Numbered from the stretch's first letter, positions 840-33,180 are shown. The stretch: DNA of 64,000 nucleotides from Trichoplax adhaerens (GCF_000150275.1 NW_002060948.1:5768411-5832410), one strand, 5' to 3'. The notes: a model not told the origin generated them from the sequence alone. Numbers and translations: made by a program.

Positions 840-2558
840 ATGGATGGAACCTTACTAGGAAAAGATCTAAGATCTAGCTGCTGTCTTCTGGCTACTACTG
901 CTGTAAGTCAAATTATCACTGCTATAGTAGCCTATGCTCTGCCATGCCAAATTGGTTTATATGCTCCGTGTTTGACAGCGCAATGGAATACTTTCTGGGT
1001 TGCGGGACCCCTAAGTCTAGTATAAATAATCGATCAGGTCTCTAATATTTTTATTATTCATAAGCTAAAATTATTAGTGGCTTGAGGATCTCTTCGAAGT
1101 TATCCTATCGCCTATTCTGATTTGATGCTAATCAGGGAAATGCTGATGATTGCATCAAATCTACTATTTAATATTGTGTTCACACAAAATTTAGTTTTAC
1201 ACTTGAAATAGCTATTAAAATGAATCTTAACTTCAAAATTGATGAATTGAAGTGCATTGTTTCTCTTGTAATAACCATAGGTAATGCTATTTGATCTATT
1301 TGGCTTTATAATAAACAAAAACAATAATCCAAGCATAGGCAATGTAAGAGCGGAATAATTCCATCATTATATAGAGTGAATATTAAATTTTACTGGCGGA
1401 TGACTTAGTATATTATATTGCTAAATTTTACATATTTATGAGTCCTTTAATGCAACTGCAGTGCTAGTAGATACCGCTACATAAAGTCTAAATTTGGCCA
1501 ATTCTTCAAGTTGTTTTACTAACCGCGTAAATTTATAAATATAGTTTTAAATGAAATTGAATAATTTCAATCTCATATTTACGATTACGCTGATGTAAGG
1601 AGATTATTCCAGTCTTCTTTATCAATATATATATAATATATATCAGTTTTTATTACAGTAAATTTAACGAAATTAAGTTAAGTTTAAGCCATTTCAAAGA
1701 ATTGGAATAATGTCATAGGAGCATTTCAGTCTTGCTACGGACATGTCAGAATTTGCCACAGAACATGAACTTGTATACAAAAATAAAGCTATATATAGTT
1801 TCAAGGAAATAACTAAAAAGAGAATTTTATAGCAACATTGCCCATGTAAAGGCATTTAAGATATTATGACCTATACTGTACTATAATTAGCATAATCTGT
1901 TTACAAACATTTCGTATTCGGATGTGGAAATTGCTAGAATATGTACTAATATGATCGGCTACATATGTTAAAGTTAGCCTTCTCAATACTAATTCCCACT
2001 TACAGCATCCTAGCTATACTCGGTTATCTTTATTTTTTTCACACCACAAATTAAATGATTTAATTCTATTTTACTACCATTGCAGGTTACATGGCACAAG
2101 ATTATAGGTACCTTCTGTATATTTACTGAAATTGGGGGATTGACCGTAACTAGATTTACTATGTATTACATTATCGGAATAGCTAGTTCCCAAGATAATT
2201 TTAATTGTCCTGATAATATTAATTTGAAAAGTGTTCGAACCTCAGCTATTTTGATCACTAATGCACAATTTATCATCTATCTATATTACATCATCGTTTT
2301 AATATGGGTTATGAAAATTTATAATTTGGGTCCAAGTTCTTCAATTAGAGAGACTGGAAGCGATGGCATCATCAGGGTAAGAGTATGCATCTCTAGTAGG
2401 TATATAAATTAGTGATATACTCTCGTTCTATAGTAAATTATTTTGGTTAAATGATTTTTCAAAACATATTAACTAATATTCTCGCAATACAACAAAATTT
2501 CATTTTACAGCCGCATCGTTTACGTGAGAAAGATTTGCAAGCCAATAATGATAATTAG
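840..2558 (+). pseudogene. MS4A/CD20-like four-TM gene, paralog A; probable pseudogene (exon1 840-1010, exon3 2086-2376, exon4 2511-2558; no intact exon 2 found)
   Basis: Exon 1 ends LPCQIGLY...NTFWVAGP like the paralogs, but the donor reads CCC|CTAAGT (1011) instead of CCG|GTAAG. Only a decayed exon-2-like stretch follows the AG at 2004-2005. Exon 3 (VTWHKIIG...AQFIIYLYY) and exon 4 (PHRLREKD...) have normal splice sites. Confidence 0.7.
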
Positions 2559-3535
2559 GAGAGAATAATATTAAGCGATGTCGAAAGAATTGTTATCACA
2601 ACTCAGACCTTATAACTGGAGCTACGTGAATATAGCGTTTTATGTGTGTTATAAGTTAAGATTAAAATGATAAATGAATAAATTGTATCAAATGCTAGCA
2701 TAAATGCGCAAGTCATGACTGCGATAGAAATAATTCAAACAACGAGTTGCAAGCAGTGGGAAACTAACATTTTATACCGTATAGTTTAGAGATATTTTAA
2801 AAAGTGAATCAGCATTATAAATAGCTATGATAACAAAGACTGAGAGATATATTAGGCTATGATGCTTATTCCTAACCGAGTTACACCATAGAAGCAGATA
2901 AATATCAATAAAGAAATGATCAGACTCTGCCATGATACAATACATAAAAGCAAATTTCACGAAGACGGCAATGAATATCAATACTAGTAGTAAAGCTGAT
3001 AAAAGTACAAAATTTTAAAGTACTGCTAATAAAGCATGCAGGTGTCCGCTAATTCTGGCTAAAGTTGTAAGTCTAAATAATTACTTTCTACTCAATTCAT
3101 TCTTTCATAGTAAAATGAGAAATGAGTTAAAGTTTTATTTGTAATACGTTGAATATGATCGGCAAAGTTCATGACCGAATTTTAAAAAAATTTACGGTGA
3201 ATAGTTGCATGTCTTATTTTAATATTAATGTAAATAGTATTATTGTTGTGGTAAAAGTAGATGAGACGAAACGCTACCTCAAATATCGCTATGAAGCAGA
3301 AATTTTTTGTCAACCATGAATTAAATATAGCAAGATAAAGCAAATTACCCAAATATGGTATAAAAAAAGTTGATATAAGATTTATTTCATGTCTATCATA
3401 AGGAACAGTTAAGGTTCTCAAGTTAATAGCGATTTTTTCTCGCTGGTTATATAGGCTGAATTCTACTAAGCCGAGAAATATTTTCTGATTCGCTTGCTAA
3501 CTCAAATGAGTTTGTCGATAGCGTAATTTTTTACT

Positions 3536-4575
3536 ATGTCTGGTAGCATTTATCCTGCTACTACCTCCAAAAATACGGCCCACTATTGCAACCATTGTAG
3601 CTATAAAGTACAAGATCATACATTTGCACTTACCACCATAACTACGATCCAAATTACTATCGCTGCCATTGGATTATGGTTGCCATGTCGATTTGGTTTA
3701 TATATATCCAGTCTCAATTTTTATGCCAATACATTTTGGGTTGCTGGGCCGGTAAATGAGTACATAGTTAAAATGCTGCCTATTGATATTATTATTCTAT
3801 GCATAAACAGAAAGTTTTGACGTTGATAATTCAATCATCTATTCTACAGCATTGCCTATGTTCATAACATACGAATAATTATTGTATACGGTACCTTAAA
3901 TCTATACAGTAATATAATATTACACAATCAATTAGCAATAATAACAGGTATAAAATCTAGTTTTATTTAATGCTGCATTTTAATTTGTTCATTAGCCTTG
4001 TAGATAAAAATGCCTATATCATGTAGATCCTATCCGATAATAAATAGTTTCATAATCTCTAAAATCACTAGAATAATATAGCAGATACGATTGAATTTCA
4101 CTTCTTGACTGAATAATTTTGATTACAGACGCTAGCATTTAGCATTATTAGCAGTATCATCAATGCCAATGATAAACCTGACTCAAATTGGGTATGTATT
4201 CCTAAAATATTACCGAATCGAAATACAATTTCTTCCCATTTACTAGCCCTAACCTTAAAATTCTCAGTATGGACTATCGTTAATAATATATTGTAGGCAT
4301 GGTTTCACATCATTACTGGTACCGTGTGCTCATTTTGTACATTTGCAGGATTAATAACATTAGGATTCGCATTTTTCGATATGGTTACATTAATTGGCCC
4401 AAACAGCAATTTGAAGTGCTCTACCAACGTGGGTAGCTCGGGATTAACGCAAGTAACGCTTCCTGCTCTTATGGCAAATGCAGGCCAAATAATAATCTAC
4501 ATTTACTATGCTTTTGCGATTAAAGAAATTATGGCCCCCAATTTTAAGCAGGAGGCTACATCGGTGGATATTTAG
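3536..4575 (+). CDS. MS4A/CD20-like four-TM protein, paralog B (exons 3536-3751, 4129-4191, 4297-4575; about 185 aa; orphaned exon 4 at 4774-4803)
   Basis: GT-AG phase-0 introns join LPCRFGLY...NTFWVAGP | TLAFSIISSIIN... | AWFHIITG...GQIIIYIYY, giving four hydrophobic segments. The stop TAG lies 5 nt before the conserved intron-3 donor at 4581. Confidence 0.75.
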
Positions 4576-6516
4576 AAACGGTAAATAATTTAATGCAATT
4601 ACGTTTTAAAGCCACTTTATCAGGTGAATAAATGATTAATTAAGCGAAATTTTAGTCTTCGTTTTACTGAACTAATCTTGATAATAACGAATGAACATTT
4701 AATTATCTTTAAAATTAAATTTATTTTTGATATAAATTATTAGCAGCATTGGCTTTGTTACTCATTTCATTAGGTGTACGCTAAATTTGAAGAAGACTTT
4801 TAAATATCGTTTACAAGATAAGAAAGAAATGGTTCTGAATTAAATCATAGAAATGATTCAAGGGCAATGTCTTAAGTAACTTGTAATATTCGCTTTCCTA
4901 TTTGCGTGTAGTCGAGATATGATGTCAGAGAATTTGATGCAATGATTGATTTAAGTACAGTAAATAAACGAGGATTAGCAGTCATTTTATTTCGTACTAG
5001 CTTTTAAGATACTTAGGGCAAAAAAAATGTAATCTGGATAGAATAATATGGCATATGTAGTTAAAGTGAAGTAGCCTTCACAAAGATGCTACGGTAATCA
5101 GTCGCATTTTAAAGCAGTATTCTTGCGGAAATAATTTTTCGATAATGGTGAACATGTTCAAGCAAAATTTTTTATAATAGCAATATTCCTCAATTTTTAT
5201 AATTGTGAACTTTCTGAGGCGTGCAATCGCTTTTCTGTAGAAATTTCATACGCGGAAGGCTGTTTTTCAGGACCTTGTACGTACGTGCAAGCAAACTATC
5301 AGTTCGGTTATGTTATCTCCTAGATTGTGTATGCATCTGGACTACAAATTTACCTAGAATTATTAGATCCTACGATCTTCGTTAAATTAAGTTTCGTAAT
5401 TTGTGTTTCCATGGTGCAACGTTTGCATCGTTATCGTAACATAATTTCCATAAGATAACTTATCTAGGAATGTGTTAATTTATTGATGACGTTTTACATA
5501 TATTTTAATAGATAATTGAATAGTTGCATAATATTATCTATAACCTTTTAGTTAATGTTTAATCAGGTTTACTATAAATTGACCGGCTTTTCGATAAAGT
5601 TTAGTTTCAGTTTGTCTAAAGAGAAACTCTATTGGTTACTGTTCCTCCTGACGATAGGAGATCGTCAGTATTTAGAGTCATACTGCCAGTAGATGTCAGA
5701 GAAGAAAAGCCAGGCAATAGACTCGTAGTTTTAGTTTTCTGCAATAGTTTTATTTTTCGTCGCTGCAAATTTAGAATTGTAACGATAATGTAGACAGACG
5801 ATACTAAATAACATGTATAACTTTCTTGCGGTCGTTTTTGAAATTATCTACGTTTCAGGTAAGGATTATTTAATACAGATTATTGAATTATTTAATATAG
5901 AACCGTACTTATACATAAAGAAGCCACGAAAAGTTAATTGCTAATTGGATACTAATCTTTGCCGTTTCTTCTATACATGATATTCTACTACAGAAACTTA
6001 AAAGTTTCAATCAATTTAGAAAAGAATAAGTAGCTCATTGTTTATTCGTTTATATAAGATCTCTTGATCTAAGTGTCAGCTAAATCATTGATCTATGCAT
6101 TGGATTGATTTACGCTAAGCAATCGTCTTTTAAGCCTTAATTTCTTGTCTCATAAATTGACTTGCTAGGAAATGTACATTTATACCAACGCATTTATACT
6201 GAATATCTCTTCTTTTTATCTGTTTATATAAAATCTCTTGATCTAAGTGTGAATTCAATCACTAATCTATATATTCGATTGATTTACGCAACCAATCGTC
6301 TTTTAAGGTTTCATTTCTTTTCTTATATGTCTATCTGCAAGTATAGTGTACATTTATACTACGATGATAACCTCTCTTAATTATTACTTTAACGCTCTTC
6401 TAACTGTTATCAGAATTAATTTGCCCAATAGTTAAAGGATAAAGATGTAGTTATTCAACATGAATCTATGCCTGGATCTAGAATTTAGTCTAACACACAT
6501 TAAGAAATTTCTACAG

Positions 6517-7172
6517 ATGATGTCAATCTATTTATTTTATAAAAGCGATTGATCTAAGCTGATGAGCATATCTTCTAATCTTTCTACCCTAATTTGGCCT
6601 TAATTTAGGCTGGATGTCACCAGAATCTTGCTTGCATTTGCCTCCTCTGCGTCTTTGCAAGTACTGTAATTTTAGTTGTGATTATACATTATAAGAGCAC
6701 TGATTCATTTTCCCAAGACGCTTACAGTCAATAGTCCTAATGGACAATTCACTTAGAAGCAATTACAAGATTCCGCCATTCCGGTTACGATACTACAGTT
6801 TATGATTTATATATATGTTTATACTATATATGGTTTATAGCGTTTGCTATAACTTCTTACAGATCTATGATAAATAGTACCATGACAAGAAACTTACAAC
6901 GAAACATCCAACAATGTAAGTAATATCGAATTTGATTATAAAGTAGGAAAATAAAGCTTTCATTTTAAGTTCATTGTCGGTTATAATTTCAAAAGGCTGC
7001 TATAGCAAGTGCTGTTGCATATTTTAGAATATTAGAGATATTTAATTTTACTAAGTAACTGCATTAATCTAGTTACTCCATTTATTTATAGACGCAGCCC
7101 TTGGCGAAAGAGAATCATGAAAATTTATTGGATAATAATGATACCAAACATATAGCTGTTAACGTATCTTAG
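6517..7172 (+). pseudogene. Decayed MS4A-like paralog (exon-2 remnant about 6517-6561, exon 3 6609-6915 with stops and frameshifts, exon 4 7092-7172)
   Basis: After the AG at 6607-6608 it reads AGCHQNLACICLLCVFASTVILVVII (cf. paralog C ILIQKILSIVCLLCLFGGYVILGI), then in a shifted frame LQDSAIPVTILQFMIYI. Donor GTAAGT at 6916. Exon 4 TQPLAKE...KHIAVNVS* aligns with paralog D VQQLRDE...KNVAIDMDAK*. Not in the ORF track. Confidence 0.75.
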
Positions 7173-10100: not shown

Positions 10101-11134
10101 TTAAGTATGAGTATGTTAAACAAGCACCATTTAGTTGAGCTATTAATATTTAAAGAGACAATCATGGACTAGTACTATAACATAGCTTATCCTAACTTAA
10201 GTCTACTTGCAGGCTCCATCTAGACAAATAACATCGAGCATCTTACCCGTAAATTCTAAAACTTTATGTTGCTTAATTAATGTCCAACATCGTATATTTT
10301 GAATACGGTACTATCTTTAATCATGCCTATTTAGAAGTTTATTCTGATTTACCTTGAAATCACATAAATGCCAAAATTTTAGCTTGACTATTAATACATG
10401 TTATCTAGTAGGACAATAGAAAGATATTCTAGGAACTTATCTTATTTCAATAAGCTTATGAGACGATAACAAACTTTTTAAGGATTTTTATTAATTAATT
10501 AAGAGATCTACGCATGTTCTGAGAATAGGTAGCTTAAGAATCCATAGCGTTGTTATTTTAGTAATTGGGTCAGCTATTATCAAAATAATAAGAGCAGCTT
10601 AATTGCTATTAAGAAAGCTGACGACTTTAATCATTAATTTGCCAGGAAAAATCTATGCGCGCTAAGTATTGTCCTAATTGATAATAAGTAATCTAAGTCG
10701 TATTCGCAGTTGACTAAACTAAAATTGTAAACGGTAATCTAAAGTTGTTTGTGAAATGAAAATGCAGACTAATAACTAATATACTGGCATGGAAACTGGT
10801 ATTAAACCAATATTTTTAGTAAACGGTAAGCCACGAAGTAGATATGCTAGATTTACAAAAATTGAGTTAATCGCAATTTACATTACTATCTCATGTACAG
10901 TATAACCTCGTTTACACCAGCTTGGCTGGTACTTGTAACTTAAATTCATTTATTTATTTATTTATTCATTCATTGTATCAGAATCTTCTACACCTATCGA
11001 TTAATGTCCATTTATTAGAGAAAACCCTATTAATACAGGTTAAAAAGGTATTAAAATTTTACTTATCTCTAGTGGCGTTTCTATATTTCAAATTATTATC
11101 CTAAATAAAGTTTTACTATAGTGTGATAGAGTGT

Positions 11135-12407: not shown

Positions 12408-13778
12408 ATGTCATCTATAAAGCCTGTCTTAAATGTTCCTGTTAGTAATACAAATGTTATTGTAACTCCTTCATTAATATCATTTCGAAAACTTGGCATA
12501 CAGTGCGACATCACTATTGCTCTGGCATTGATTCAGATCATCGTTGCAATAATCGGATTAAGTGTATACTGCCCATTTGGTATATATATTCTTAGTTTCA
12601 ATCAATACTTCAATACATTTTGGGTAGCAGGACCGGTAAGCAGAATTAATATCGCCAACTACCTTATGATGGCTTTATAGTCAGTTATCATATTAGATTC
12701 AAAGGATAAGTAGGGTATTCAAAACTAAGATTAAAAGCTGATGTTGTATATTTTCAACAGCAAGTTTAAATGAAATAGATTTAGAAATAGAGCAAATTTA
12801 TTTGTAGTCTATGGCTAATTGATGAATTTATCAGTTTATTCTATGATGCCATTAAAATGATCGCCTTTTATGCTTCTAGATGCTCGTACTTGGTGCTGTA
12901 GGCCATTTCATAAATAGAAGAAGCAATCATTCAGAAAGAGATGTAAGAAATAATGCATTAATCTGTCGTAAATTCATCGAACATATCTAATTATGCGAGC
13001 AGAAAAGAAGCAGTAGCTGCATTAGATTAAATTAATTATGAAGGATATTAGACTATACTAATCGGCAAATTATAAATTTGATCATTACGGCTTCTCCATT
13101 GAAATTTCCACTTTCATGCCCTAGTTAATTAAATTACTGTAAAGTTTCGGCTATCTATTTCAAGTAATGTAACAAATCGCTTTATATTTAGGTAATTGAA
13201 GCGATTACTTTATTAATTAGAATTCATGTCTATCATTTTATTTTGTTATCTTCAATTAAAATCTGTTCTTAAATTATTTCGGTTATATACTTTTTTACTA
13301 GATCCTAATTCAAAAAATCCTCTCTATTGTTTGCTTACTATGTTTATTCGGAGGATATGTGATACTGGGAATTACTATGCGTATATTAATCAACGCAGAA
13401 ACATATATTAAAGTTATATGCGAATTCGATCAAGAAATAAAGTCTGAAACACTTCAACCAGTTGCGATGGCGGTTGTGATAGTCCAAATATGCTTGTATC
13501 TCTACTACCTCGTCATCAGCAGTTTAACGAAGAGAGCTTTCACATACCGCTTAAGTGTGCTTATGGCTACAAGTAGCCAAACATTGACCGTAAGGATAGA
13601 CTACCTTTCTTAGTAATATTATAAAATTTTTAGAGAGTGCAATACTATAGGCCAATTATTAACTTTGGTATACGTTGTATAGATCTAACGTTGTTTACTG
13701 ATCTGATAGGTTCCATCATCATCAAATCCTAGACAGTCACGTAGTGAGACTCCTCAAAAAACTCTTCCTGCTCATTAG
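12408..13778 (+). CDS. MS4A/CD20-like four-TM protein, paralog C (exons 12408-12635, 12880-12942, 13302-13589, 13710-13778; about 215 aa)
   Basis: Open frame across three canonical phase-0 introns. Motifs YCPFGIY...NTFWVAGP | MLVLGAVGHFIN | ...VQICLYLYY. Confidence 0.85.
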
Positions 13779-17242: not shown

Positions 17243-18076
17243 TCTTCATAAAAAGCGGATTTTTCCGGATTTGTGTCCGATATAGTTTTCGGATTCTGGG
17301 ACCGGTCGGGTTTGTGTCCGATATAATTTTCCTGTTTTGGAACCGGTCGGGTTTATTTTTAATTTATGTCTGAATTATAATTTTCTGTTCTAATTTTTGG
17401 ATTTTTGTTCATGAAAAATATCGTAAGAGTTGATTTTTGAGATTTGGACTTTTTGTTATGAATTTGAAACTTTGGAATTTTATGACGTGACTTGAAGTCA
17501 CATTAGGAGATTTAGTGAGGAAAATAGAAAATAAGATCGAAATTGGCAGAGGTTGTGTTGATTGTTAGGTAGTTAGAATGCTGTTTTTATGACTAAATCT
17601 TGATGTTTAAAGGTTGATTTTTAGCTTTTTATAGTGTATTAATGATAGGAATTATGTTAGAAATGAAGTTTGATGTATTTTTATAGTTAGCTTGTTACTT
17701 TTATAGTGTTTTGTAAGGGAATCGTAGGGTAAATTGTGTCTGAACTTTGAATGATTTTTGTTTTCTTAAATGGTGCANNNNNNNNNNNNNNNNNNNNNNN
17801 NNNNNNNNNNNNNNNNNNNNNNNNNNNGGAAATGCACGATCAGTACGTAAATTAAATCAATCTGTAAGTAATATCAGGAATTCTGAAGTAGATAGTACTC
17901 CTAGAGATCAGAATCAGTCAGCAGGTAATCGTAGGAGAAACTATCATCATCGCCGATTACATCGAATAGGAAGATTAGGTGATATTGACTCGATAGCAAC
18001 AATCGATGATGTTGTACCTGCTCAGCATGAGCACATTATCGTAAACCGTCAGTAAAGCGACGGGAGTTTGCACCAG
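17243..18076 (+). mobile_element. Probable longer Helitron copy spanning the assembly gap
   Basis: Starts A|TCTTCATAAAAAGCGG with subterminal direct repeats (TTTGTGTCCGATATA...ACCGGTCGGGTTT x2). Ends with the family 3' end GAGCACATTATCGTAAACCGTCAGTAAAGCGACGGGAGTTTGCACCAG|T. Joining the two halves across the gap is inference. Confidence 0.5.
17778..17827. other. Assembly gap (50 N)
   Basis: Run of N in the sequence. Confidence 1.
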
Positions 18077-21000
18077 TGAACCTGATTCAGCAAATGGCCA
18101 TATCTATATCTAGCTCTAAAGTCCCTCTATAGGCTTTTAGGTCTTCCCTTTGTATATTCCTGCGTTGTTTATATCCACAATAAGAAATATTTTCCCACAA
18201 TGCCGTAGGCTCCATCTTATAAATTAGAGTAAAATAACTCATGAAATTTTCACTATGCGTAAGCTGATGCTCGCTGCTCAACAAAATGTCATACACTTCT
18301 TTTCGCAAGAATTAATATCACGATAACATTTCCCAATAAGAGCCAAATTTTAGTGCTTATGCTTAAGCGATGAGCATCGTCAGTAACTCATTTTAGTAGG
18401 TAGGATATAATTGAAAAGAGGATTGAATCTTGCATTGTGAGTAAAGTTAAACTTGTCCTTTCTCCATAGAGACTCGATTGGTTGTGAGTTTGTAATAGAA
18501 ATTAACTGAAAGGATTATTCAATCAGGAAAAACTTTTCGAAATAATTTCTAGTAAAGAATTTCGCAGCTCAAAATTCTACTTGGTTTGCAACAATCAAAC
18601 TTCAAGTTCTATATCTTGGGAAAGGGATTAACAATTCTATTTGTATTAGCTGAATTTTATTCAGTTTTTACGGTGAAACGTAGCCTGGGGCGCAGCTTGT
18701 ACATTAACGTGATTTTTTCATCAACTATCTATTTTACTCAATTTTTTAGCTTTTATGACGCTCTGTTTCCGCTCTGTAACTCCATAATATCATGGACATA
18801 TCTCGTTCCTCGTATTAGAATACTTTAAAGTACTTCAAACCACATGGATTAACTTTTATCCTATTACATAGTTATCGAATATATTTCTATATCAAACGAG
18901 TTCTTTTATTACGACCGTCTGATCACTTGCATTAAGAAGAATCAACGTATGAAATAATAATTCAAGAGTTACTTCATTATGTAGTCTAATAATGGTGTAT
19001 GTCTCTACTGCTATTGTATCACAGTCTATAATTAATTACCTTTCTTCTTTCCCAGATAATTACAATTCAACTGCCTTACAATGAACTACCAATCGAATGT
19101 ATCTGCTTGGTTATTATAAACTGCCATTGTGTCTATACAACTAACCCACTTCCTGGTAAAACCTGGGGAAACGGGAGAGTGATGAATATGAATAATGATC
19201 ATCAAAATCGATTAATATACAGCATTCATTAAATAGCTAGACAAATAAAATTGCTTATTGTAGTGTATTTAGAATATACTGTAACTATATACCTACTCTT
19301 AAGTATAGACATGTTGTATTGCTCTTATATTTAGACATATCTACAGTCCGCTTACTTCACATTCATATATAGGCTACTGTATTTAGTTATTACGGTACTC
19401 GCTGTTTGCTACAATCATCAGCTATGTTGTAGCCTGTTATGGTATATGTTGTATCTAATTCTACAATCCTATTCTCTGTATTTGCTCTATCTTTAAAACT
19501 ATAAATACCGCCGATTTCCACCTCAGAAATTGTTCGTTTCCTGGTTAGTCTTCACACGTTACTCATGACAGCTTGCACGCTGATCTACCGTAACTACCTC
19601 ACTGTACTTACTTTACAACTTAAAATAAAGCATAACTTTTATACAACTTTTGGTGTACTAATTGTAAATGGAAACTAAATCTCAATCCTCCGAGATATCG
19701 AACCCCCCATCACACTTATTTAATACATTCCATTCTTCAAAACAAATATTTAAACAGTATTCATTTGGGAAGGTGTGCAATTGTTCTGTATTATAAAAGC
19801 TTCGTTTCAAAGGATGACTTTGATGGTTATATTAACTTATTTTAACTTCCATTAATTAGTATTCGAATTGAACAATTAAATTCAAAACGTTATACAGTAC
19901 AGGTTTTTCACTTCCGTATTCAGTGGAAATATTGAATAAAAAGAGAGATAGCAAGTAAACTGACAGCAGTTGATCTACCACTACTTCTGGTTCGCAATAG
20001 GCTTAGACAGCTACAAGGTCACTTTGTTTTAAAATTTCTACTTCAAGGTACAACGTGATTTTCTTCAAGGATTTTTTCTTTCCACTATAATTAATGCTAT
20101 TTACTTTTAAATTGAATGCGATTCGATAAATTTAGTATTAATCGGTCATTTAAAATTTATTTTTAACTTAAATTGCGTTTAAATTTGCTTAGTTTTACCT
20201 TAATGCGTGAAATGTAGGTTACCGTAAAAGTAAGTCAAAAATTTTCCATTGGCTTGAAGAAAAGTAGAGATTTATCAAGTCTAAAAGGGAATCTTTTTTA
20301 CCCATAGTTAACTGTTCATAACTCTACTCTATCCGAATAAAGTAAGCAGCAAGATCTTAGTTATAACCTCTACATCATGTAATGTTGCCTACTTTTATAT
20401 TTTCTGCCCGTCTACAGTATTGGCTAATTTCGGACATTGGCCGCAACCTATATATATCAGGCCAACAAACTATTGCACGTTACCGTACCTTACCATTTAA
20501 GTAATCTTTCGATCTTAACCGCTATATACACTTATCAACGCAGCAGGTCATAAATTGTCCTTGATTTTATGCTATAGAAAATAGAGTACATACATCGGCG
20601 TTAATAGCATATTAATAGTATACTTACACAAGCTATCACAAGTAGGGTGTACTAGTAGTATTACTGTTAATGGCAAATTCTTATCTTGGCCAGAATAAGG
20701 TTCAAATCGGCTATAGTGCTTCTATAGACATTTAATTATAAGGTCTTCACTTTTTACTTCCTGTTTCGGTAAAGTATTAAGATTATATTGTGCTTGTAGC
20801 ATATGACTTAATACAAGTATTCTAAGTTGTTCTTAAATATAGATACTTTGATAAACTTATAGCACTGTAAACAGGTATAGTTTGTTATGTTTGAACATTT
20901 ATAGCACTTACAGTCTTCGCCATTTTCGACAATTATTTCGTTACTTTAAGACAGCCAGCTTAAACTTGAAGTTTAAAATAAAGAATCGATTTTCTTACGC

Positions 21001-21257
21001 AACGCATTTAAGTTAATCTCAAAATAACTACTCAATCTGTTTCCGATAAATTATCGAATCCTCCATCACATTTTCCACTCATGCTCATTAATATAAACTT
21101 TACCATAAGTTTATGACTATTTTTGTATCTGGCATCATAAAAATTGGCAGTAACTGCTTTTCAGTAATTGTAACGTAAATTAACAACCGATTAATTTTAA
21201 TTAGGAAAGATTCCTTAGCTCATTTGAATTTTCAAATACCGGTCAGAATCCTTCACC

Positions 21258-23706
21258 ATGCCACGCATTACATCTCCAATGACTGTTCTTTCGGAAGGAA
21301 TTCGGAAAATTAATATCCATTTAAACATTGTCATTGTCTTGACAGTGATTCAATTGGCCGCCACAGTACCAGCTTTAGTAATGCCTTGTAGATATGGTCT
21401 GTATGTGCTCAGCTTAGTACAATATTATAACTCATTCTGGATTGCTGGGCCGGTAAGTCAATTAATAATAATTTTGTTATTAGCTAACAATATTAGAATA
21501 GTCAAACCTCATGGCAATTTTGGTCGTACCGCAAAATGATCTGCTGAAATATAGAAAATAGAATATAGCTTATATAAAGTCTAGAAGTATCGTGACATAA
21601 TTAATATTATTACTAGGTCTTTTAGAGTAGAATTTCAAGTTAGAGGTAATCATTCTAAATTTCAAACAGTGCATGTTGGTATATAAGAAATTGCAGTCGA
21701 TGATAAAAGAAAGGATAGATTTAATTTAGCCATATCGATAGTTGTGACTTATTGCCACTTACTTTAGCTCCATTAAGCAAAAGTTGGTAATTGCATTTTA
21801 GACTTTATTAGCTTGTTAGTTAAATATATTGACATATTGACATATTGCTTATTCGATATCTTGAAACTATAGCACAATTTGATAGTTGCTACTTTAAAAT
21901 TGAAAACTACTTCGGAATCATCTACGATAGAGTTTTATATAGAACGGAAGAGATATCGAATAAAATAAGATATATTGCTGATACCATATCGGGAACATAA
22001 TTTATTTAAACTCTTATATTCTACCAAATTGTCATGCTTATACTATTCGGTTGCATTCTCCTGACTTCCGAATTTTGTAACAAACCTATCAAAGTTTTGT
22101 TTCTAATCTAGAAGAAATCTAATTCTCACAAATTGGCAGTCTTAGTCTAGATAGAATTTAAAAAAGCTTTTATTGCAGTTTTTATTACAGCGGTTTAGAA
22201 TAGCAAAGCAATACTGAACTACTATCAAGAATCTAGTATAAATTATCTTGAACCCAATTAAATCAAGATCTCCTACTTGCAGTTTTAAATACGAGTGTAT
22301 TTAGTTTGGCCTATTGGCAGCAATAATATCCCTTACAATCATACCAGAATCATCAATAAATTATTTTTCTTCAAATACGGTATTAATCTATCTATTTGAG
22401 ACGGTTATGTCTATATTAATGTCTAACACAGTAAGGTTTTAGGCTTCTATAAAATTGTAATATTTTAATTTGCACTGACATTGTACTGTAATTTAGATAA
22501 CCGGCTATTGCTAGTTATATAATCGAAAATGATTGCAATTATAGCCAACATTTTGAAATACAAGCAAAGCGGTAATATTTGTTAATTATTAGTAAATTTA
22601 ATTATATTAAATATTGTAGTCGACACAATTGAATATGAAGAGCATCCTTACAGTACTGCAACGCTTTAAAATTGCATAATTTTATTATTATTTGTCAGTT
22701 GAGAAAATGAATACTATTCGCTAATATCCACGTAATGCCCAAGATTGACCATAATCTGTACAGAAGATCGATCTACGCGCTATAATTTTAACTTAAAGTG
22801 GTCTATCCCTTATAATTTGACACCATGCTGAAATAGATTGTATATAATCATCTTATGTCACTGATTCAACTTCTAATTACTATTAGGGAGAATTGATAAC
22901 GAACTGCTTTGCTTCTATATTTTACTAACATATCATGTTTACAGAATTGAATACAGTTGAGTAATATCATGTCTTCTTTACTGTTATGATCAAAATATAT
23001 TAGATGCTGGTTTTTGCCCTTTCTGGCCGTTATATCAACAAAAATCTAACACTAGAAGCTGTAAGTTTATTATTCTGAAAATTGTAAAAGTAATACTTCC
23101 GTAAATTAAAACTGCATCTCATTGTACTGTCGATGTTAAGGATGTTGCGCGTCTTTTTCTTTAGATAACAATACATAAAGGGTTGAATATCATATGTATA
23201 CTTTGTGTTGGTGCGGGTTACGTTATTCTGGGCTTAACCTACCAAGCATTACTCTCAGTCAGCGATTCGTCTATTTCGATTTCTTGTGGTTCGGTGCTCG
23301 TTTCTTTTAGCCAATATCAAACCATAGCTATCGTCGTTGCAGTTATACATTCTATCGTCTACATTTATTACATGTCGGCTTGTGGAACAACTTGGAGAAC
23401 ATACATTATTTGTGTTGCAAGTATGGCTTTATTACAAACTGGCAGTAATTCAAGAATTCCGGTAAGATTAATCTTCAGTAATGTCAAAAATAGACTCACA
23501 AAGGAACTCCTTTAGTTTCCAACAATTACGATCATCTAAATATCTTCCGATTAGTTTCTAGTATTTTTGCAAAAGCGAAAATATTAAAATGACATTTGTT
23601 GGGGTTAATCTCTATTTAGGTGCAACAACTACGCGACGAACCTCCCGAATATGGGCAGGATCTCGTTAGTTCAAAGAACGTAGCTATAGACATGGATGCA
23701 AAATAA
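21258..23706 (+). CDS. MS4A/CD20-like four-TM protein, paralog D (exons 21258-21452, 23004-23060, 23165-23461, 23620-23706; about 211 aa), C-tail PPEY motif
   Basis: Open frame, canonical phase-0 introns, 57-nt second exon. Motifs MPCRYGLY...NSFWIAGP | MLVFALSGRYIN | ...IHSIVYIYY. Confidence 0.85.
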
Positions 23707-25342
23707 ATCAAACAATTAGATCTTTCGAATCACGGTATTCATAAACAGTCTATTTATATGACTTTGATTTAATTGGAAAAGATGCTAATGCTATAAAGGT
23801 TAATTTTTAGAGTGCTACTTCAAGCCTTTATTGCATTAAGTATTACAGCTTGCTTAAATTATCTTACTTAGTTTAATTGCAGTAGATTTCACTTAGTATC
23901 TTAGTATATTGTGGATCTGAGTACTTTATTCAGGTTAGAATATAACAATATCCAGTAGTATCATTTTCTTAATAATTATATATTGTAGGAATGTAATTTA
24001 AGGGATATATTGAAGTAGTATAACATTTTATTTCAATGATAATAAAATTGATACCTAACTTTAATCATAAATTGTGGTAGAAATATGATACTTTGCTATC
24101 AAATGCCGCGTGAATTCGACATTTAGATCTAACGTCCAATTTTAAGATTGCTGGTTTTTCCCAGTGCTTTATCATAGTTATGTTTAATAAAACGTAGAAA
24201 GACGCAATTTATATTTGAAATACAATTGTCATTAATTTAGTAATTTCGAAAATCTAGGGTAGTATTTATCTTCTCATATGTGCTTAATTGCTAGTTTAAT
24301 TTAGAATATTTTAGAGTGATAAATTAATGGTCAGATACCGCCAATTGTTTTATATTGCATCTATAAGGTAGTATAATTAAATAGCTGAGTGGTTTAAGTT
24401 AGGTAAGTAGAGAGGTAAAGGTTGGAGTATTCCTAAAAGTTGTGAGTAATTTCATTTTTAGATGGTTTGGTTGGTTATAATAGTAGTTCTGCCCTTTTGT
24501 AATTACTTTACTTGATTTGGTAAGGTTGTGATTAGAATTTATAATAAACAGGCGTTTTCCCCTAAATTAAGCAATGATAGGACTTAAAAGTCGCTAGTTT
24601 TGATAATTATAATTGGACGCCCATTATAACTCTATATTCATGATTTTTGACCGAGCATATTATCAGCAACGTCGTTAGTAATCTTTTTAAAAGCAATCCA
24701 TAATTACTTTCCTATTGGGTAAGTAACCTTTAATGGTGATATTGATATAAGCGATTTACTAAGCTAAGGTAATAATCATTTGGATAAAATACACTAGAAC
24801 AGAATAAAATATGATACCTCAGAAAGCTGAAGCAGCATATATTATAGACATGAAACGGTAGATGTCAAGCAAATAAAGCATACAATAGCGAATTGGATAT
24901 CAATCTTAAGGATTACAATAATAGAATAAATTTCAAACATCAATTTCTTATAGTAGTTTAGATTATATAATTATTAGTTTATATTAATAATCACGCTACA
25001 GTACTACGATAAAGGGCCTTCTCAAAAACATAACGGTTTTTTATAAACTTCACTTTATTGCATAAGATTAGGTTTATCTTACAACTACCAAGGACTATCT
25101 AACTGCAATCAGACTATCTCTGGACTATCTAAATTATTACAGATTTTCATAATTTATATAAAATTAGTTACACAATGATTTTCCTTCAAATACAATCATA
25201 TGTAAATTCACTATCGCGCTATCAATTCATAATTCACTCTTCTGGTTAAAGCGTCATAATATAAATCTCGCAGTTTTAACATACAGTACTTAGCGCAATC
25301 TATTACTTACCTAAGAATCATAATATAACCATCTCAATATAA

Positions 25343-25892
25343 ACGAGCAGCGCGGGGATATTTATACTACTATTAGATGACTGTGATTATGGGTTCATTT
25401 CAATAGGTCAGTATAAGATTCTTACCGTACTTTTTACCTCAAGATTTCTTCATGTAAAACGAATAGCTCTAAGGTAGCAATTTCCGCAGAGTACTGATTT
25501 TTAAAATAGTATTCGTTATATCGCTAAGGGTGGCCGCTGGGCCTTTCAATGTTGATTTGATGTAATACTCTGATGAAAATTGAATAAACATAGAATCTTT
25601 ATAGAGTTTTCTACACAGCCATTTTGATTGTTACATTTTCTTATAATGGTTGTTATAGACAGAGCAAGCGATCCTTAGACACATTATAATAATTGAGATA
25701 GAATTGACCACAGTACTAAGGACATTGTACCGCACTGTCGATAGCTTACAGTACCTGCTAATCTTAACTTGGTATGTCCATCACCGTACATTAGTTATCA
25801 TAATGCGCTTTGGAGCATGAACTAATCTTAATATAGCATTTCATAGCATTTCATCTGTGAATCGTCAGCAAAGCGACGTGAGTTTGTACTAG
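25343..25892 (+). mobile_element. Second copy of the same Helitron-like element (5'-truncated, about 130-bp internal deletion)
   Basis: Reverse complement of about 15325-15828 plus the 3' hairpin and CTAG|T. The paralogous empty site at about 11490 shows insertion between A and T with no target-site duplication. Confidence 0.75.
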
Positions 25893-28800
25893 TTATTACA
25901 ATACGTAGTGTAAACATCTTCACAATCAGGCACTTATGCAATATTATAATATAGAGTACTGTACAATTTATTTATTTTCGTAAGATCCTATTATCTTAGT
26001 CTTAAGCTTATTTGGGGCTCCACTACAGGTACTAATTATGGAAACTATTGAGGCTGATTTCCAAATCTAGACGCTATTCCTTAGTGTGACAGCTATTGGA
26101 TTCCTTACACAGAAAACATATTTGTTTATCCCGTAGATTTCAGGTATTTTTTTGCATTGTTCTTCGTTTATAATGAACACTGTAATTTGTCTTAAATGGC
26201 TTGTACTTCTGATTATTTTTAGTCTTTATTGAAGATTTGCATATTTTGCCGAAATTTACTAACCCAACAAAGTGAGTTTAGACGACCTGACAGACACTAT
26301 GCTCTCCTTTCTCTTAATAGATATTTTGTAGCTAGATCGTTTCGGTAATTAGATATCATAAGTTAGCAATTGTGTGAGATAAGTATTTCTTGTTATTGCT
26401 ACAATAAAAGGTATGTTCTTCTTTGAAGCGCAATTCGAAGTAATTTTAGAATTTTCATGTGTGCAGTGATCAAGGAATGTCAAAATTTAATGGTGTGCTA
26501 CCATAATTACCTACAGTAACATATATGTAAAGCTTGGCATATTACATTAGTGCAAACCAGATTTCTTTCAATATTATCGCCCTCAGTCTCTGAATATATA
26601 ACCATACCAGAGAACTTCTATATCTGAATGCACACTGCATTCTATTTGCGATTATTAAAATCTTCTGTGAAGCTAATATTGAGTCTGCCATTTAATTACG
26701 CAGAAGCCTTTGCGAGTATATTGTATTAAGAATCATATCTAGTGTTAATATAATTTCTCTCTGAAATATCTAAACCATACAGGAATATCCTGAAAAGATG
26801 ATAATAATTATTGCTATTAAATGTGATTTCTCGTTGAAAATATCTACGGATATGTCTTAAAAAGATGAGAATGTATTATTGCTTCTAAATATAATTTCTC
26901 TTTGAGAATATCTAAAAAACATACTGTTATATCTTAAAAGGATTAAAACGATGATAATATTCATTGCTTCTATTGATGGTAAAAGTACAGAAGTAGACTT
27001 TTAATTAATTAAGAATTAATTCCTCAAATACTTATTTCTTATTAGAGTCTCACATTAGCTGAATAAATCATCACATTATTGACTTAAGTATAACTTAAAG
27101 GCCTAGATGAAAATCTAGAGCCAAACAGATGCAACTGATTGATTCAAAAATGTTAAACCTCTTCAATAATTAGATTCATTCACAGATTAACGCACAGTGA
27201 ATTAGCATGAAAACATGATGCTATGCATGATGATAGCATTCATTAGCTCTATTATGAGATCTTTTTAGAGTAGGCAATCGATTAATGACAATTTTATTAA
27301 GTTTGCATGAATTTATACAACTTACATTATTTTACAATCTATGTGAAACTTATTTAATCATTGACCAACTACAAATAAAAAAATCGGGTTCAGAGAATTA
27401 ATATCTGCTTTCTTGAAATTCAATAATATTTTTTATACTCTTGTTCCATGGATATTGTTACGTGACTTGCATATTTATTAACCTGCACGAGAATTAATGT
27501 CATAGAGGCTTAATCTTAACAATTGTTAAAATTAACTTATTCTATCAATTAGGTTTGGTTTTTACTTTATATTTTATCTTATTCTATTCCAAAATTAAGG
27601 CAGTAATTGGTGCTATTAATTCAAATTCCAATCTAAATATTATTATTATGTAATTGTTGGGAGATTAAATTAAAATAAGGATTATTAATTTTTGTTTCTT
27701 TGTAATCTATAGAAATTTATAACTTCACTAAGATTGATTGATTCCATTTAACTTGTATGTAAATGATTGAATTGTGAATGAGTTGAATGACAGTTTTGAT
27801 TAGCAACTGCTATAATAATAGAAGAAATATAGTCAATGTCATATTAAAATAATTTTAATTGGACGTGGTTAATAATAACTCTCTATGTTGGCTTTAAAAT
27901 TAAAATGCTTACTTCAAAATTTTCAATTTAAAGTTTAAACTTTTCCATTATATCAAACCGGAATTGTATCGCAGGCAACAAACAGAACATTTGATTCCAT
28001 AGTAGGACTGATATTCATTAAAATAAAATTAATTTATGAGATATGATAGTTACTAATGGATAATAGCAATTTAAATTGGACAAAATATCATGCTCACTTC
28101 TAAATAGATGAATTTGATATATGTATAAGCGTATGATCATAAAGGGTTAATCGTCAGTTAAATTATTCAACATAGCCCGGCAACATCAATCTGACTGATA
28201 GCTAGTCTACAGTGGTTTTGTGCCTAAATAACCGTAATTTAAACTATTTTCGATTTGGATATTCCAAACTTTAGCGTTATGGCTATCAAAATTTGCACTC
28301 GTATAAACTATTTAGTGTATGATAGATCCACATTACGATAGTGCAATGACAAAATTTGGAACGCCAAAGTTGTCCGAAATGGGGAGTGATATAGAAACGT
28401 CTTTAATCACCAAGGTTGCTCAAATTCATTTCAAAATTTCGTAGCTAATGTAGGCGTTTTTTAGCACTGATAAAATGTTTATTTGAAAAAAACCATTTAG
28501 TTAACAGTAAATATATTAATCAAAAATATTTCATGTTTAAATTTAAATTTAATTTAAATACATTACGATATGCTAGCATAAAATTGTCGTGCCACTTTTG
28601 CTGAAGTAATCCACTCAATTCATTACCATAGCTTAGCTTTTATTTTTAATAGAGTGGTTACTAAGATGGAATAGGGTAGAGAAATGCCTAAAAAATGCTT
28701 TCTGCTATACCGTTGATTTAAGAAATTTATCCTTTTTACATTTTAATCCTATCAAAATATTGTATTCTTGACGTATTTCTTTACCAAGCATCATCATGGT

Positions 28801-29281
28801 AATTCTTTTACCTTAAAAATATTGTAAATGCTTGTAATTAACAGTTCATGCATAAATTGGCAACATAACAGGCAGAAACTGCATAAGCATTAAAAGAATA
28901 GTCTAATATAGCATAAGCATAGTTTTAATATAATGATGTAGGAATAGGATTTTAATTTACTATAATTTTTTAATACATTTCTAAACCAATCATTTTGTGT
29001 TAGTTTTCAAGGGAAGTGTCAAAATGTCATTCTTTTCAACGTCTTTATGAAAATATCGATTTAATTGGTTAGCTAGTTTTATTCAAAAACAATAAAAATT
29101 AATTACTGTTCTCAAAATATTTTCTAGCTTCCTGTTTAGCATTTGTATTTAATTAAGGAGGATAATATTTCTTTTCTAAACCTTGAAAACACCACAACGG
29201 TGAAAGCCTTTCGACAAGTAGCATTTGGATAGTCCATGGTGTATGCGTTGTACGTTTTATTTTAAGCTAGCCTAAATCTAA

Positions 29282-29920
29282 TACTTCGTCAACTAGGTAA
29301 GTGGATGATCAAATTCTTTTATCGAAATTTATACGCTGTAATATCAATCATGTAATGTTTCATTTTTTTTAATATTTGCGGCTATTTCATAAGGATCGGT
29401 GATCACTAAAAATGACTAGTCAATCTTGTAGTTTATTCCATCCGACATCGAATATTTATTTAACAAATAATGAAAGAATTGACTTTACTCCAAGTTATAT
29501 TTAGTACTAGTAATTTAGCGTAGCTAAAATCAATTGAATTATTTTAATGTATAAACCACTATAGTTGAAGTTTGTGCCTGGTACACATGTTCATATATTT
29601 AATTTTATGTCTTTTAAGTTTAATTTTCGCCAACTAGGTGAGTAAATGATCAATTTCTATTACCAAGTTTACATAATATGAATCTAAGTAATGATTTATG
29701 TCTTAAATATTTACGGATATTTTGTAAGGACTGGTGATAACTAATAACTACAGTACTATAAGCAGTGTTCTAGTTTATTCTATCAGACATCAAATATCAA
29801 CTGAATAAATAATAGATATTGTTGACTATTTCTCCAAATTAGATTTAGAACCTATGAACTTAATGCAGTTAAAATAAATTAAATTACTTCAATACACAGA
29901 TCATTATAATTAAAATTTTC
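29282..29920 (+). repeat. Diverged direct tandem duplication (about 342-bp period) upstream of paralog E; each unit begins with a splice-donor-like site
   Basis: TTCGTCAACTAG|GTAAGTGGATGATCAA vs TTCGCCAACTAG|GTGAGTAAATGATCAA, with collinear downstream similarity (TAAGGA..GGTGAT.ACTAA, TAGTTTATTC.ATC.GACATC). Confidence 0.75.
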
Positions 29921-30952
29921 GGAAATGGAGACTCAAATCATGAAACGTAAGTTAATATCTGCAGCGTTACTAAAGTACTTTGAAAACAATGAGAAATAAT
30001 AAATAAAACATCGGTTCTTACGACCCAACTTTTATCATAGATGATAAGAAGTAATAACCAAATCCTTGAGCAGTAATAAAATTAATCTTCAACTCAGATT
30101 CAAATACGCTTGGTCTACTTTCTACTCTAGTCAACAGTATTTTAAAAAATTGACTTTAACTATAATATAGAATTCCAAAAGACTACAATGACTTTATAGT
30201 AAAATTAAAAACTAAAAAATTAAAACACATTGTTCCATAAAAGCGTGATCGCTTTTACTCTAATAGTTCATTCTAAATTACTTAAGCCTGACTTTTTCTA
30301 AGTGAAATAGAATTTAATATCCATTTCTTTGTCTTTGCGTTTTACGCTCATACGTAGTACAAAGTTTCTTCCAATATATTTTTATACTTACATTTGTAGT
30401 GGAGAAATTGACAGGTATAATGTAAGTCTTACCTCTATAGTTTTATTACTTACCTAGCAAGAATTGAATTCTATACTACCTAGGATAGCATAAAAGTCGA
30501 CTTGACTTAATTGATGATAATTATGCTACATGTGCATCGACAGGAGACTTAAATTTATAAAATTTATTTTGATCCATGTAGCCAAATAGTCATGTAGCGT
30601 AATTTAGTATTCAAATTAGAAAACTTCCAATAAAGTAGACAGTTTATGTTGCTTTAGCTAAATAACTAATTTAAAAAGTAGAAATGTATTATTCAATCCT
30701 TAATTAATTTGACGTCATAAAATGTAGCACAAATAAACTTCATAATTATCCCTAATTAATTACAGATTTTTTGTTTTAAATCAAAATTCAAATACGGGTG
30801 TTATATATGGCTTATAACATTTAAATTAAAATTAAAATTAAAGAAGTTAAAATAATTTATTCAATTACGTCAAAAACTGCTAATTTCAGCAAATCCAGGA
30901 CTAACAGAAAATTTCCAGTTTAGAAATTAACTCATTTAAAGTTAAACTCAAG

Positions 30953-33180
30953 ATGGATTCAACTAAAAAGCTTCGCGATGAAATTACCAACTCTGTACAC
31001 CAGGACAGGTTAATTACTTTAATGCGCCAATTAACTTATGAATGCAAAGCGATCGTCATCATGGCTACCCTTCTAGTAGGCGTAGGAATTGCTAGATTAT
31101 CAGTACCAAACTTTGCTTATTACACTCTTGGAGTAGGATTATTTGGCCACTGTTATTGGGTTGGAGGATTGGTAAGTAATACTATCTTCAATAAATATTG
31201 GATTAACATTCTAAGCTGTTATCCTATTTGCTAGTAAGCTATATCATGCATCAAAGTAATGGCTTAGACATTTATCCATGATTACTACTAATCCAAGTAT
31301 AAGATTTGATCTTCATTTACTAATTACATAGGAGGTTTTAGCGAGATCCTTAGTTAACATCAGGCTCTATTTACTCAAATTGCTATCAGCAGCCATAAAT
31401 ATATGATGGATACACGTAGTACAGCAACTTACTCTAAGACATCCTTAAGAAATCAGGCTGCTACTCTAAACACTTTGATATAATGCGTTCTCCGCTTATT
31501 CCGGACAAGCAAACATGTTTTGATAACTTATTTTAGTTAATTGAAAGCATTTTCACAATAACTGCAGTAGCTTATTCCCATAATCAGTACAGAGAAACTC
31601 ATAAATATCATTTTGAATCAAAAGGATATTTTATTTTAACGTTAAAAATACTTACACCTCAATTATTAGAATCACGATAGCTTACGTACATGTTCTCTGG
31701 CTATCGCATTTATTAGTGCAATAGCTAATCCAAGTATATATGATTCGATCTTCATTTACTAAATATATATGTATAGTAATATATATAAATTATATAAGAA
31801 GTTGGACAAAATTCTTAGTTCATGCTTATGAAAATTGTACTCTTCTGCCAATCTTTCTGAATCAAAACCGGTGATTTTATTTGTTCTTTCCCAATGTAAA
31901 ACATCTATGAATATTGGAACTGTGGTGATTTGATATTCATATCATTATAATAGCTATTAACTCTTATATGCGTAATTTATACTTAAATAGTTGCAGTAAT
32001 TTCTATTTTCTACAGTGTATGCTATGTTCATGTAGAATAATTAGAAATTGCGATTGAAATAGATTGCCAAGACAACCCAGCTTTACCTTCTCTTGTCATG
32101 CTACGTTTAGATTATTATTACCGGAATAGTTGGTGTTATGGTTCACAAAGATGAAATTTTTCTTAAGTTAATGGTAGGTTTTGATTTTAATTAATTAATA
32201 ATGCGTCTAATCTAGATCATTTCGTAAACGAAGATTATCAGTCATCTTCAGAACTATTTTTTAAAGAATACTAATACATTTCTGCGACAGTCTAATTTTC
32301 AGAACTGCTATTAGTGATCTTATACATTTATTTCATATAAATGGAGGACGTTCTTTCATCAAAATTTGCTATTTTTAATTTTATTTTATTCCTTGTAACA
32401 AACCAAAAACAAATTCTTCAGCAATCATTTGCCACCTAATTAAAATTTTAATGCTGAATTTTCGTAAACAGTCAATTTTTTTTCATTTTAATTGAGCAAT
32501 ATAGCATTTTAAGAAGCACACTTTATTTTTTCACCGTTTTCAATTTAGAAATAAGTCCTACGGGATATATACCTTACGTCACTAATAAAGCTAATCATGC
32601 TCTTAAAATCTGCTAGATTTGCTTTGATATAAGCGTTAATGAAATATTCAAAACTCTAAATATTACCAAATCAATTTCTATGAGTTGATATCCTACAACT
32701 ACTGCACTATGCATTATACTATTCGCTAATCAGGATCTTAAATTGAATTTAATAAAGGCTCAAATCCATTTAGGATTTGCAATTGCAAGCACCGTGGCAG
32801 TAGTAGCAGGATTTGGAATTGTCGTCTATAATCTAAGTCGTCTACCGTCGCTACCAGAGAGAATTAATATCGTCTATAACTTGAATAACTGGTCAAAAAC
32901 TTATGGCATGGTAGCCAGCAACGCCATCGCTGATATTATTATTTTGATGGAATATATTATCTTTTTTTGCATATGCTTGCATTGCATTATAACCTATAGA
33001 ACTCTTCCTCAGCAGAGCATAGTTGATGAAAGGACCAGTGATATGGTTAGCTTTGTGGCTTAATTATGAATTTCTGTAGATATATTAAACTTTCCTTACA
33101 GTATGATCGTATATGTATGTTGATTTCGTTTATTTTAGGTAAAAATAATTGGCGCTGAAGTTCCTTTAAAAGACATATAA
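30953..33180 (+). CDS. MS4A/CD20-like four-TM protein, paralog E, the most canonical member (exons 30953-31171, 32111-32173, 32758-33045, 33139-33180; about 203 aa)
   Basis: GHCYWVGGL|IIITGIVGV resembles the MS4A TM2 consensus GYPFWGGxx|FIISGSLSV, and TM4 ILMEYIIFFC resembles the MS4A LLEFCI motif. Open frame with canonical splice sites. Confidence 0.85.

Follow-up and report, generated by a model that had tools for sequence, protein, structure and literature searches.

A placozoan tandem array of genes for small four-helix membrane proteins in Trichoplax adhaerens, candidate remote relatives of the CD20/MS4A-type tetraspans

We analysed a 64,000-nucleotide stretch of the Trichoplax adhaerens genome (the window; C1409:5768411-5832410 on a 5.98-Mb scaffold of a 105.6-Mb assembly with 1414 contigs and ~30% G+C), which carries part of a tandem array of genes for small membrane proteins. 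Using open reading frame listing and motif scans, we were able to identify five complete copies of the family in the window, named g1 to g5 from left to right and all found on the + strand (Table 1); the first exon ends with FW[VI]AGP in g1–g4 and with YWVGGL in g5. When the six-frame translation of the window was searched with a full-length family profile, a sixth, broken copy (psi) was detected, and there was no seventh, since nothing beyond g1–g5 and psi scores in this search. Cross-paralog tblastn comparisons give E-values down to 1e-13 for exon 1 and 6e-8 for exon 3, and a profile built without the subfamily of g5 still scores 29 bits against the g5 protein and 49–75 bits against the closer relatives of g5. 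The encoded proteins are 185–215 residues long with four predicted membrane helices each. The proteins of g2–g5 match the public models TRIADDRAFT_57761 to 57764 exactly, which identifies the DNA as that of T. adhaerens; these models are annotated as 'uncharacterized' only and have no domains, and our literature search found no paper naming the TRIADDRAFT genes of the array.

The window holds the right-hand part of the array, which extends ~80 kb further upstream. According to a genome-wide six-frame search with the family alignment, nearly all matches lie on the + strand within C1409:5689396-5801461 (~112 kb, roughly a dozen genes), the exceptions being a few weak matches elsewhere in the genome; the family is small, with ~15–18 genes. 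The 40 kb upstream of the window contain three further complete copies and another exon-3 remnant. A preliminary description of this DNA had proposed at least six same-strand paralogs, two of them pseudogenised, in a tandem, lineage-specific array. We find five complete copies plus psi, g1 and psi are the damaged ones, and the array is tandem, restricted to placozoans and includes pseudogenes, in agreement with that proposal; the array is larger than was described, since it runs upstream of the window. Two side observations concern copies outside the window: a second exon-3-only remnant is found at L007:7719-7898, ~22.3 kb upstream of the window start and after TRIADDRAFT_57759 (its copy in the sister strain H2 is at L011:2677-2856), and a strong exon-1 match (E 1.4e-20) is found at C1060:2070-2297 on a small separate contig, inside an open frame of 1,306 residues, possibly an allele of an array gene or an unplaced copy of one.

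All five genes follow a common plan. Exon 1 stops four residues past a conserved Trp (FWVAGP|GT) in the second transmembrane helix (the helices are referred to as TM1–TM4) and is followed by an exon of 57–63 nt, an exon of 279–312 nt that encodes TM3 and TM4, and usually a short tail exon. All introns are in phase 0, all acceptors are AG and all donors are GT, with the first donor of g1 (CT) as the sole exception. Exon 2 is represented by one open piece per gene bounded by AG and GT, with a hydrophobic run followed by I-N-[KRA]. The public protein models, mapped back exactly to the DNA, use the same exons as those inferred from the sequence. The shared phase-0 architecture proposed before therefore holds for all five genes; its tail exon does not, as g2 has no coding tail exon. 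The tail of g4 carries PPEY, and the H2 model of this gene has a single tail exon (23620-23706) instead of two.

Table 1. Members of the array and the assembly gap within the window (positions counted from the first nucleotide of the window)
Feature	Span	Strand	Details
g1, decaying	840..2558	+	exons 840-1010, 1281-1343, 2086-2376, 2511-2558; conceptual protein of 190 aa
g2 = TRIADDRAFT_57761, 185 aa	3536..4575	+	exons 3536-3751, 4129-4191, 4297-4575; exact map of the public model
psi, exon-3 remnant	6609..6837	+	TM3 piece 6609-6731, TM4 piece 6757-6837
g3 = TRIADDRAFT_57762, 215 aa	12408..13778	+	exons 12408-12635, 12880-12942, 13302-13589, 13710-13778
assembly gap	17778..17827	.	intergenic, between g3 and g4; in no gene model
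g4 = TRIADDRAFT_57763, 207 aa	21258..24018	+	exons 21258-21452, 23004-23060, 23165-23461, 23620-23664, 23989-24018
g5 = TRIADDRAFT_57764, 211 aa	30953..33180	+	exons 30953-31171, 32111-32173, 32734-33045, 33139-33180

The assembly gap falls in the 7.5 kb between the end of g3 (13778) and the start of g4 (21258). The H2 contig L012 matches both flanks of the gap collinearly, with order and orientation preserved, and fills the N run with 934 bp. No family exon was found in these 934 bp, so we rejected the idea that the gap hides a copy of the family. The fill includes a second copy (97.5%) of 18074-18316, and what the gap hides is probably a local duplication.

RNA evidence consists of spliced contigs in two runs, X5 and X6, and covers g1, g2 and the psi stretch. 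For g1, contigs support the joints 1343>2086 and 2376>2511, which confirms exons 2, 3 and 4. Intron 1 of g1 starts with CT because the reference has C at 1011, where X1 and the H2 genome read G; X5 reads C as well, which makes an assembly error unlikely. Aberrant splicing of g1 is seen in the RNA contigs, with cryptic donors at 902 (in-frame, with a loss of 36 codons) and 1037 (running into a stop) and an internal splice, 2107>2337, that causes a frameshift and the loss of most of exon 3; the joint 1010>1281 occurs in one X6 contig. In H2 the GT donor is intact, and a nonsense change (TAC>TAA, at the equivalent of 2289) is found at codon 146 in TM4, which explains why the H2 model TrispH2_009455 (93 aa) skips exon 3. 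g1 has no public T. adhaerens model. We conclude that g1 is decaying, with a different lesion in each of two strains. X1 shows only G at 1011 and a mixture of C and A at 2289 (the two sites are unphased), and therefore a g1 haplotype with neither lesion may still exist. We also note that all three runs covering positions 850-851 (X1, X5 and X6) read TA, where the reference and H2 have CC (Thr to Ile at codon 4 of g1); this reflects an allele of the strain or else an error common to both references.

In g2 the stop codon (4573-4575) precedes the donor of a further intron (4581-4773), and the next exon, from 4774, lies in the 3' untranslated region (UTR); the sparse g2 contigs include the joint 4580>4774 just past the stop, and the former tail exon is now 3' UTR. 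Transcription and splicing are thus established for g1, and for g2 there are sparse contigs with one 3' UTR joint. The two pieces of psi match the family profile with E 2.4e-4 (TM3) and 0.08 (TM4), in the same order and on the same strand, in different frames and with a stop between them. The psi sequence is identical in H2, and an unspliced RNA contig spans 6205-6783 across it. As side observations, unspliced X5 contigs run through 4773-6783, from the 3' UTR exon of g2 through psi (none is found in the g1–g2 intergenic stretch), and may represent a long g2 3' UTR or a readthrough transcript; at 5470-5685 there is a repeat hot spot, where one run reaches a contig depth of ~1,670 and numerous unusual joints and loose ends cluster about a ~50-nt core (5635-5685) that looks like a short dispersed repeat; and a tandem duplication with a 174-nt unit (1.8 copies, 80% match) lies at 6041-6359, just upstream of psi.

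A tree of exon 1 separates two deep subfamilies, with g5, TRIADDRAFT_57756 and TrispH2_009451 on one side and all others on the other. Conservation among the proteins is highest at a TM1 Gln, at the N-x-F-W-x-x-G-P stretch of TM2, at a TM3 Gly and in TM4, which is Tyr-rich. In an AlphaFold2 (AF2) model, the first extracellular loop (ECL1) has ~4 residues and the second (ECL2) ~16–20. Alignments inspected by eye show Lys and Arg next to the inner helix ends, and from this pattern we infer that both termini are cytoplasmic. A Cys in ECL1 (in a 'PC' motif) and a Cys in ECL2 co-occur in 7/7 members of the larger subfamily, and both are absent from the divergent subfamily of g5, which has YWVGGL at the end of exon 1 and no loop cysteines; a disulfide probably joins ECL1 to ECL2 in the larger subfamily, with the whole pattern counting as one evolutionary event. 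A PPxY motif is carried by g4 and two upstream copies: g4 and one of these copies have it in their tails, the other copy at its N-terminus. At the corresponding tail position (E-x-P-x-Y in the alignment), g3 and g5 have a degenerate form and g2 has lost the motif.

To date the family appears confined to placozoans, as far as sequence searches tell. An exhaustive HMMER search with an exon-1 profile returned 23 of 1.84 billion proteins, the public models of the window genes among them; every named one comes from Trichoplax, and the rest group with these in the tree. A word-based homolog search with the family alignment returned four Trichoplax proteins only, and was saturated by low-complexity words. 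The exon-1 tree pairs g3, g4 and g5 each with a sequence from another placozoan lineage. The ortholog of g3, on the contig L008 of a divergent placozoan, has exons of 63 nt and 288 nt, the same sizes as in g3, and is 48–56% identical to g3 in amino acids (another L008 copy, upstream of this ortholog, was considered as a counterpart of psi and rejected, since it resembles g1 and g2, weakly). Identity between g3 and its ortholog differs by region: 75% in ECL1 and the start of TM2, 74% in TM3, 63% in TM4, 52% in TM1, ~40% at the ends (39% at the N-terminus) and 35% in ECL2. The same regional order is observed among the paralogs, with mean identities of 0.43 in TM2, 0.17–0.19 in the termini and 0.15 in ECL2, which bears out the earlier remark that loops and tails are very divergent. 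Comparison of H1 and H2 gives 19 coding changes across the five genes, of which 12 are nonsynonymous and 7 synonymous; the pooled ratio of nonsynonymous to synonymous polymorphism (pN/pS) is ~0.5, which does not indicate strong constraint and, coming from 19 changes, has a very wide error. The presence of orthologs of g3–g5 in another placozoan, together with the identical exon sizes of g3, argues that the paralogs are old and turnover is slow. On these comparisons the paralogs are old and retained, with fast evolution outside the helical core and occasional loss.

These patterns bear on one explanation directly, namely that the array is an MS4A-type repertoire of chemosensory or immune receptors other than G-protein-coupled receptors, with ligands bound by a variable ECL2 and gene turnover following the range of ligands. 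ECL2 is indeed the most variable region in paralogs and orthologs alike, the genes stand in tandem with one broken copy and another disabled by different lesions in two strains, and the strain pN/pS gives no indication of strong constraint; mouse MS4A proteins are reported to be chemoreceptors, and MS4A chemoreceptors likewise have short loops. Set against this, the extracellular surface is very small, the family is small, its paralogs are old, with orthologs whose exon sizes are identical, the divergence pattern and the strain pN/pS give no sign of positive selection, and fast loops are general to membrane proteins. The turnover once described as typical of ligand-sensing families is weak, given that g3, g4 and g5 have orthologs in another placozoan lineage. 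We regard a receptor repertoire as improbable, and its more specific version, a placozoan MS4A-type chemoreceptor repertoire whose disulfide-stapled variable ECL2 would bind small ligands, as slightly more so.

For g4 and g5, which are only ~20% identical, AF2 models were compared with solved structures. The g4 model (predicted local distance difference test score, pLDDT, 78; predicted template modelling score, pTM, 0.69) consists of four long helices with an ECL1 of 4 residues and an ECL2 hairpin of 16, and the g5 model has a pLDDT of 70. In Foldseek searches against 350,542 chains, the top three matches of both models are chain B of FceRI, with E-values of 0.008–0.016 for g5 and, for g4 (three entries, TM-score by target 0.61–0.67), 0.07–0.12, which are not significant. 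Exhaustive structure alignment against 48,161 representative chains places the FceRI chain 8k7t_B first for g4 (Z 15.5, root-mean-square deviation 3.2, 156/160 residues aligned); further matches of g4 are 8yvu_F (Z 14.0), two tetraspan chains of the dystrophin complex (8yt8_S, Z 12.4; 9c3c_n, Z 11.8) and CD20 (Z 11.3 and 9.9). For g5 all six CD20-type chains are among the top nine (Z 13.0–15.9), headed by 8yt8_S and 9c3c_n (Z 15.9 and 15.6). From chain size and fold, we take chain B of FceRI to be the beta subunit (MS4A2) and 8yt8_S and 9c3c_n to be sarcospan, presumably of a CD20-like class; our literature search found no paper confirming a link between sarcospan and CD20. The best natural matches of both models are thus of CD20 type, at Z 13–16 with 141–160 residues aligned and with designed bundles scoring nearly as high.

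The same alignments speak to membership in another tetraspan superfamily, i.e. MARVEL/synaptogyrin, claudin/PMP22 or tetraspanin. Such chains do score: against the g5 model synaptogyrin reaches Z 13.2, synaptophysin 12.2, and uroplakin and PRPH2 ~12, and against g4 the values are 11.7 for a claudin design, 11.8 for uroplakin and 10.3 for synaptogyrin (10–12 overall for claudin, uroplakin/tetraspanin and MARVEL folds). They rank below the CD20-type chains in both models, always, and by 2–5 Z units in the g4 model; there is no Pfam match to these families, and neither model shows the large tetraspanin ECL2 or the claudin beta-sheet loop. This origin is very improbable. The preliminary description had proposed a comparison of AlphaFold models with CD20 by Foldseek, in which a better match to a claudin, tetraspanin or MARVEL fold would count against its 'MS4A/CD20-like' label; the label survives the comparison because the best matches are FceRI chain B and other MS4A/CD20-type chains, ahead of those folds.

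Sequence tests for kinship with CD20 and MS4A gave a different picture. These searches used single exons or the databases' own protein models. The Pfam check proposed in the preliminary description found nothing: neither ten exon pieces nor ten full-length family models match the CD20 profile (PF04103; gathering score 27.9 bits) at E up to 10, and no other convincing Pfam family was found in either set. A genome-wide six-frame scan with PF04103 gave no match inside the window. The scan does point to other Trichoplax exons with LGAIQ...PIWxG motifs and weak PF04103 matches, which also stop four residues past the TM2 Trp with GT next; a homolog search started from a Trichoplax LGAIQ exon yielded a single unannotated fragment and no bona fide CD20-family sequences. 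At the level of sequence, the array is a family separate from these exons. In protein language-model space, a CD20 (PF04103) cluster ranks second among the neighbours of g4, and 28/30 of the best named clusters are CD20 for g5. The term 'MS4A/CD20-like' is therefore backed by the predicted fold and by the language-model neighbours, and no sequence profile links the family to CD20.

An alternative that takes these negatives at face value is an orphan placozoan tetraspan family that has converged on a generic four-helix bundle with no CD20/MS4A ancestry, the likeness being a product of long helices joined by short loops. In its favour, no sequence-profile test is positive, the scores of designed helical bundles come close to those of the CD20-type chains, the Foldseek E-values are not significant, and a published phylogenetic survey found invertebrates to lack MS4A-like genes and called the look-alikes convergent (PMC2826416). 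Convergence does less well with four other results. The divergent g4 and g5 both put MS4A-type chains at the top of 48,161 and of 350,542 chains; the natural rival tetraspan folds lie 2–4 Z units lower; CD20 clusters are neighbours of both proteins in language-model space; and the intron position after the TM2 Trp is common to the array and the Trichoplax exons with weak Pfam CD20 matches. We consider convergence somewhat unlikely, and the least unlikely of the three alternatives.

Our preferred reading is that the array is placozoan-only, encodes four-helix proteins that are remote kin of the CD20/MS4A type, and serves an auxiliary or scaffold role; we put the probability of this reading as a whole at roughly 0.55. 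Its structural part is rather likely, judging from the models: a CD20/MS4A-type tetraspan fold in very remote relatives of the superfamily of MS4A, FceRI-beta and sarcospan, with a conserved TM2/TM3 core and a minimal outer face. Several results weigh against the preferred reading. The AF2 models rest on alignments of 9–10 sequences. No Foldseek E-value passes 0.001 for g4 or g5. Long four-helix bundles score high against many structures, and a designed maquette reaches Z 13.7 (g4) to 15.0, within 1–2 units of the top matches. Besides the failure with PF04103, sequence searches of all solved chains (E up to 10), with two family profiles and with two single proteins as queries, missed CD20, FceRI-beta and the dystrophin-complex chains, and the family profile does not match three Trichoplax exons with weak PF04103 scores. 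The language-model scores, 0.90–0.91, are reached by 4–10% of shuffled proteins. PPxY is kept in 1/5 genes of the window, the adaptor role is argued by analogy only, and g3, g4 and g5 lie outside the RNA coverage. Because long helical bundles match many things and the structure-alignment tool advises caution for Z below ~13–14, kinship is not proven.

Comparison with known systems sets out what such kinship would involve. Vertebrate MS4A genes have TM2 split by an intron, and MS4A hallmarks include a polar TM1 Gln and, in TM2, an aromatic-Trp-x-Gly motif. A phase-0 intron that splits TM2, followed by a short exon, is found in 5/5 genes of the window, with the vertebrate side of this comparison drawn from general background (we found no vertebrate exon structure in the open literature). 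FceRI-beta (MS4A2) and CD20 (MS4A1) resemble the array proteins in having four helices with both ends predicted to be cytoplasmic, and give the best structural match to g4 and g5, two paralogs far apart in sequence (Z up to 15.5); MS4A genes stand in tandem, as in the array, and the Gln of TM1 and the aromatic-Trp-x-Gly of TM2 in the array resemble the MS4A hallmarks. On the other hand, the array shares no similarity with FceRI-beta and CD20 that is detectable with hidden Markov models and is placozoan-only, its ECL2 is much shorter than that of CD20, it has no immunoreceptor tyrosine-based activation motif, its TM3 and TM4 are encoded by one exon unlike those of MS4A, and its putative disulfide joins ECL1 to ECL2, as compared to one within ECL2 in CD20/MS4A. 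No literature linking MS4A with placozoans was found.

Sarcospan, a small tetraspan, acts within a larger membrane complex as an auxiliary scaffold subunit and is encoded by a single-copy gene in vertebrates. The putative sarcospan chains are the top structural match for the g5 model, and no sequence similarity to them was found; the array differs in being a tandem family, and nothing in the present results connects it to dystroglycan. Proteins of the LAPTM4/5 and NDFIP type are small polytopic proteins whose cytoplasmic PPxY motifs recruit ligases of the NEDD4 family. PPxY is what they have in common with g4 and two upstream copies; no structural or sequence match to the array was seen, and most copies in the window have no such motif. 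We file the array proteins as putative, very divergent members of a known protein kind, the CD20-type tetraspans.

By analogy with FceRI-beta and sarcospan, the array proteins could, tentatively, be small auxiliary or scaffold subunits. The helical core would pack against itself or against partner membrane proteins, the fast-evolving cytoplasmic ends would set trafficking or signalling, and the PPxY motifs, where present, are of the kind that docks NEDD4-type ligases. A scaffold subunit is favoured over stand-alone ligand-binding receptors, which are by the same analogies less likely, because so little of the protein lies outside the membrane.

As for the surroundings of the array, the next gene downstream of g5, on the + strand (37795-42985), is nidogen-like, with a NIDO domain (E 1.7e-21), a weak G2F domain and EGF/EGF_CA exons; it also adjoins the array in H2, as a model of >1,176 aa.

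The practical value of the array is modest until its expression and partners are known. A CD20-type assignment would give a name to a block of 'uncharacterized' Trichoplax genes, and g1, with its separate lesions in two strains, is a small live example of ongoing gene loss. If the chemoreceptor reading were true, MS4A-style chemosensation would date from before the origin of neurons and vertebrates. If the preferred reading is true, the CD20-type fold and the TM2-splitting intron would push the origin of this tetraspan superfamily back to early animals.

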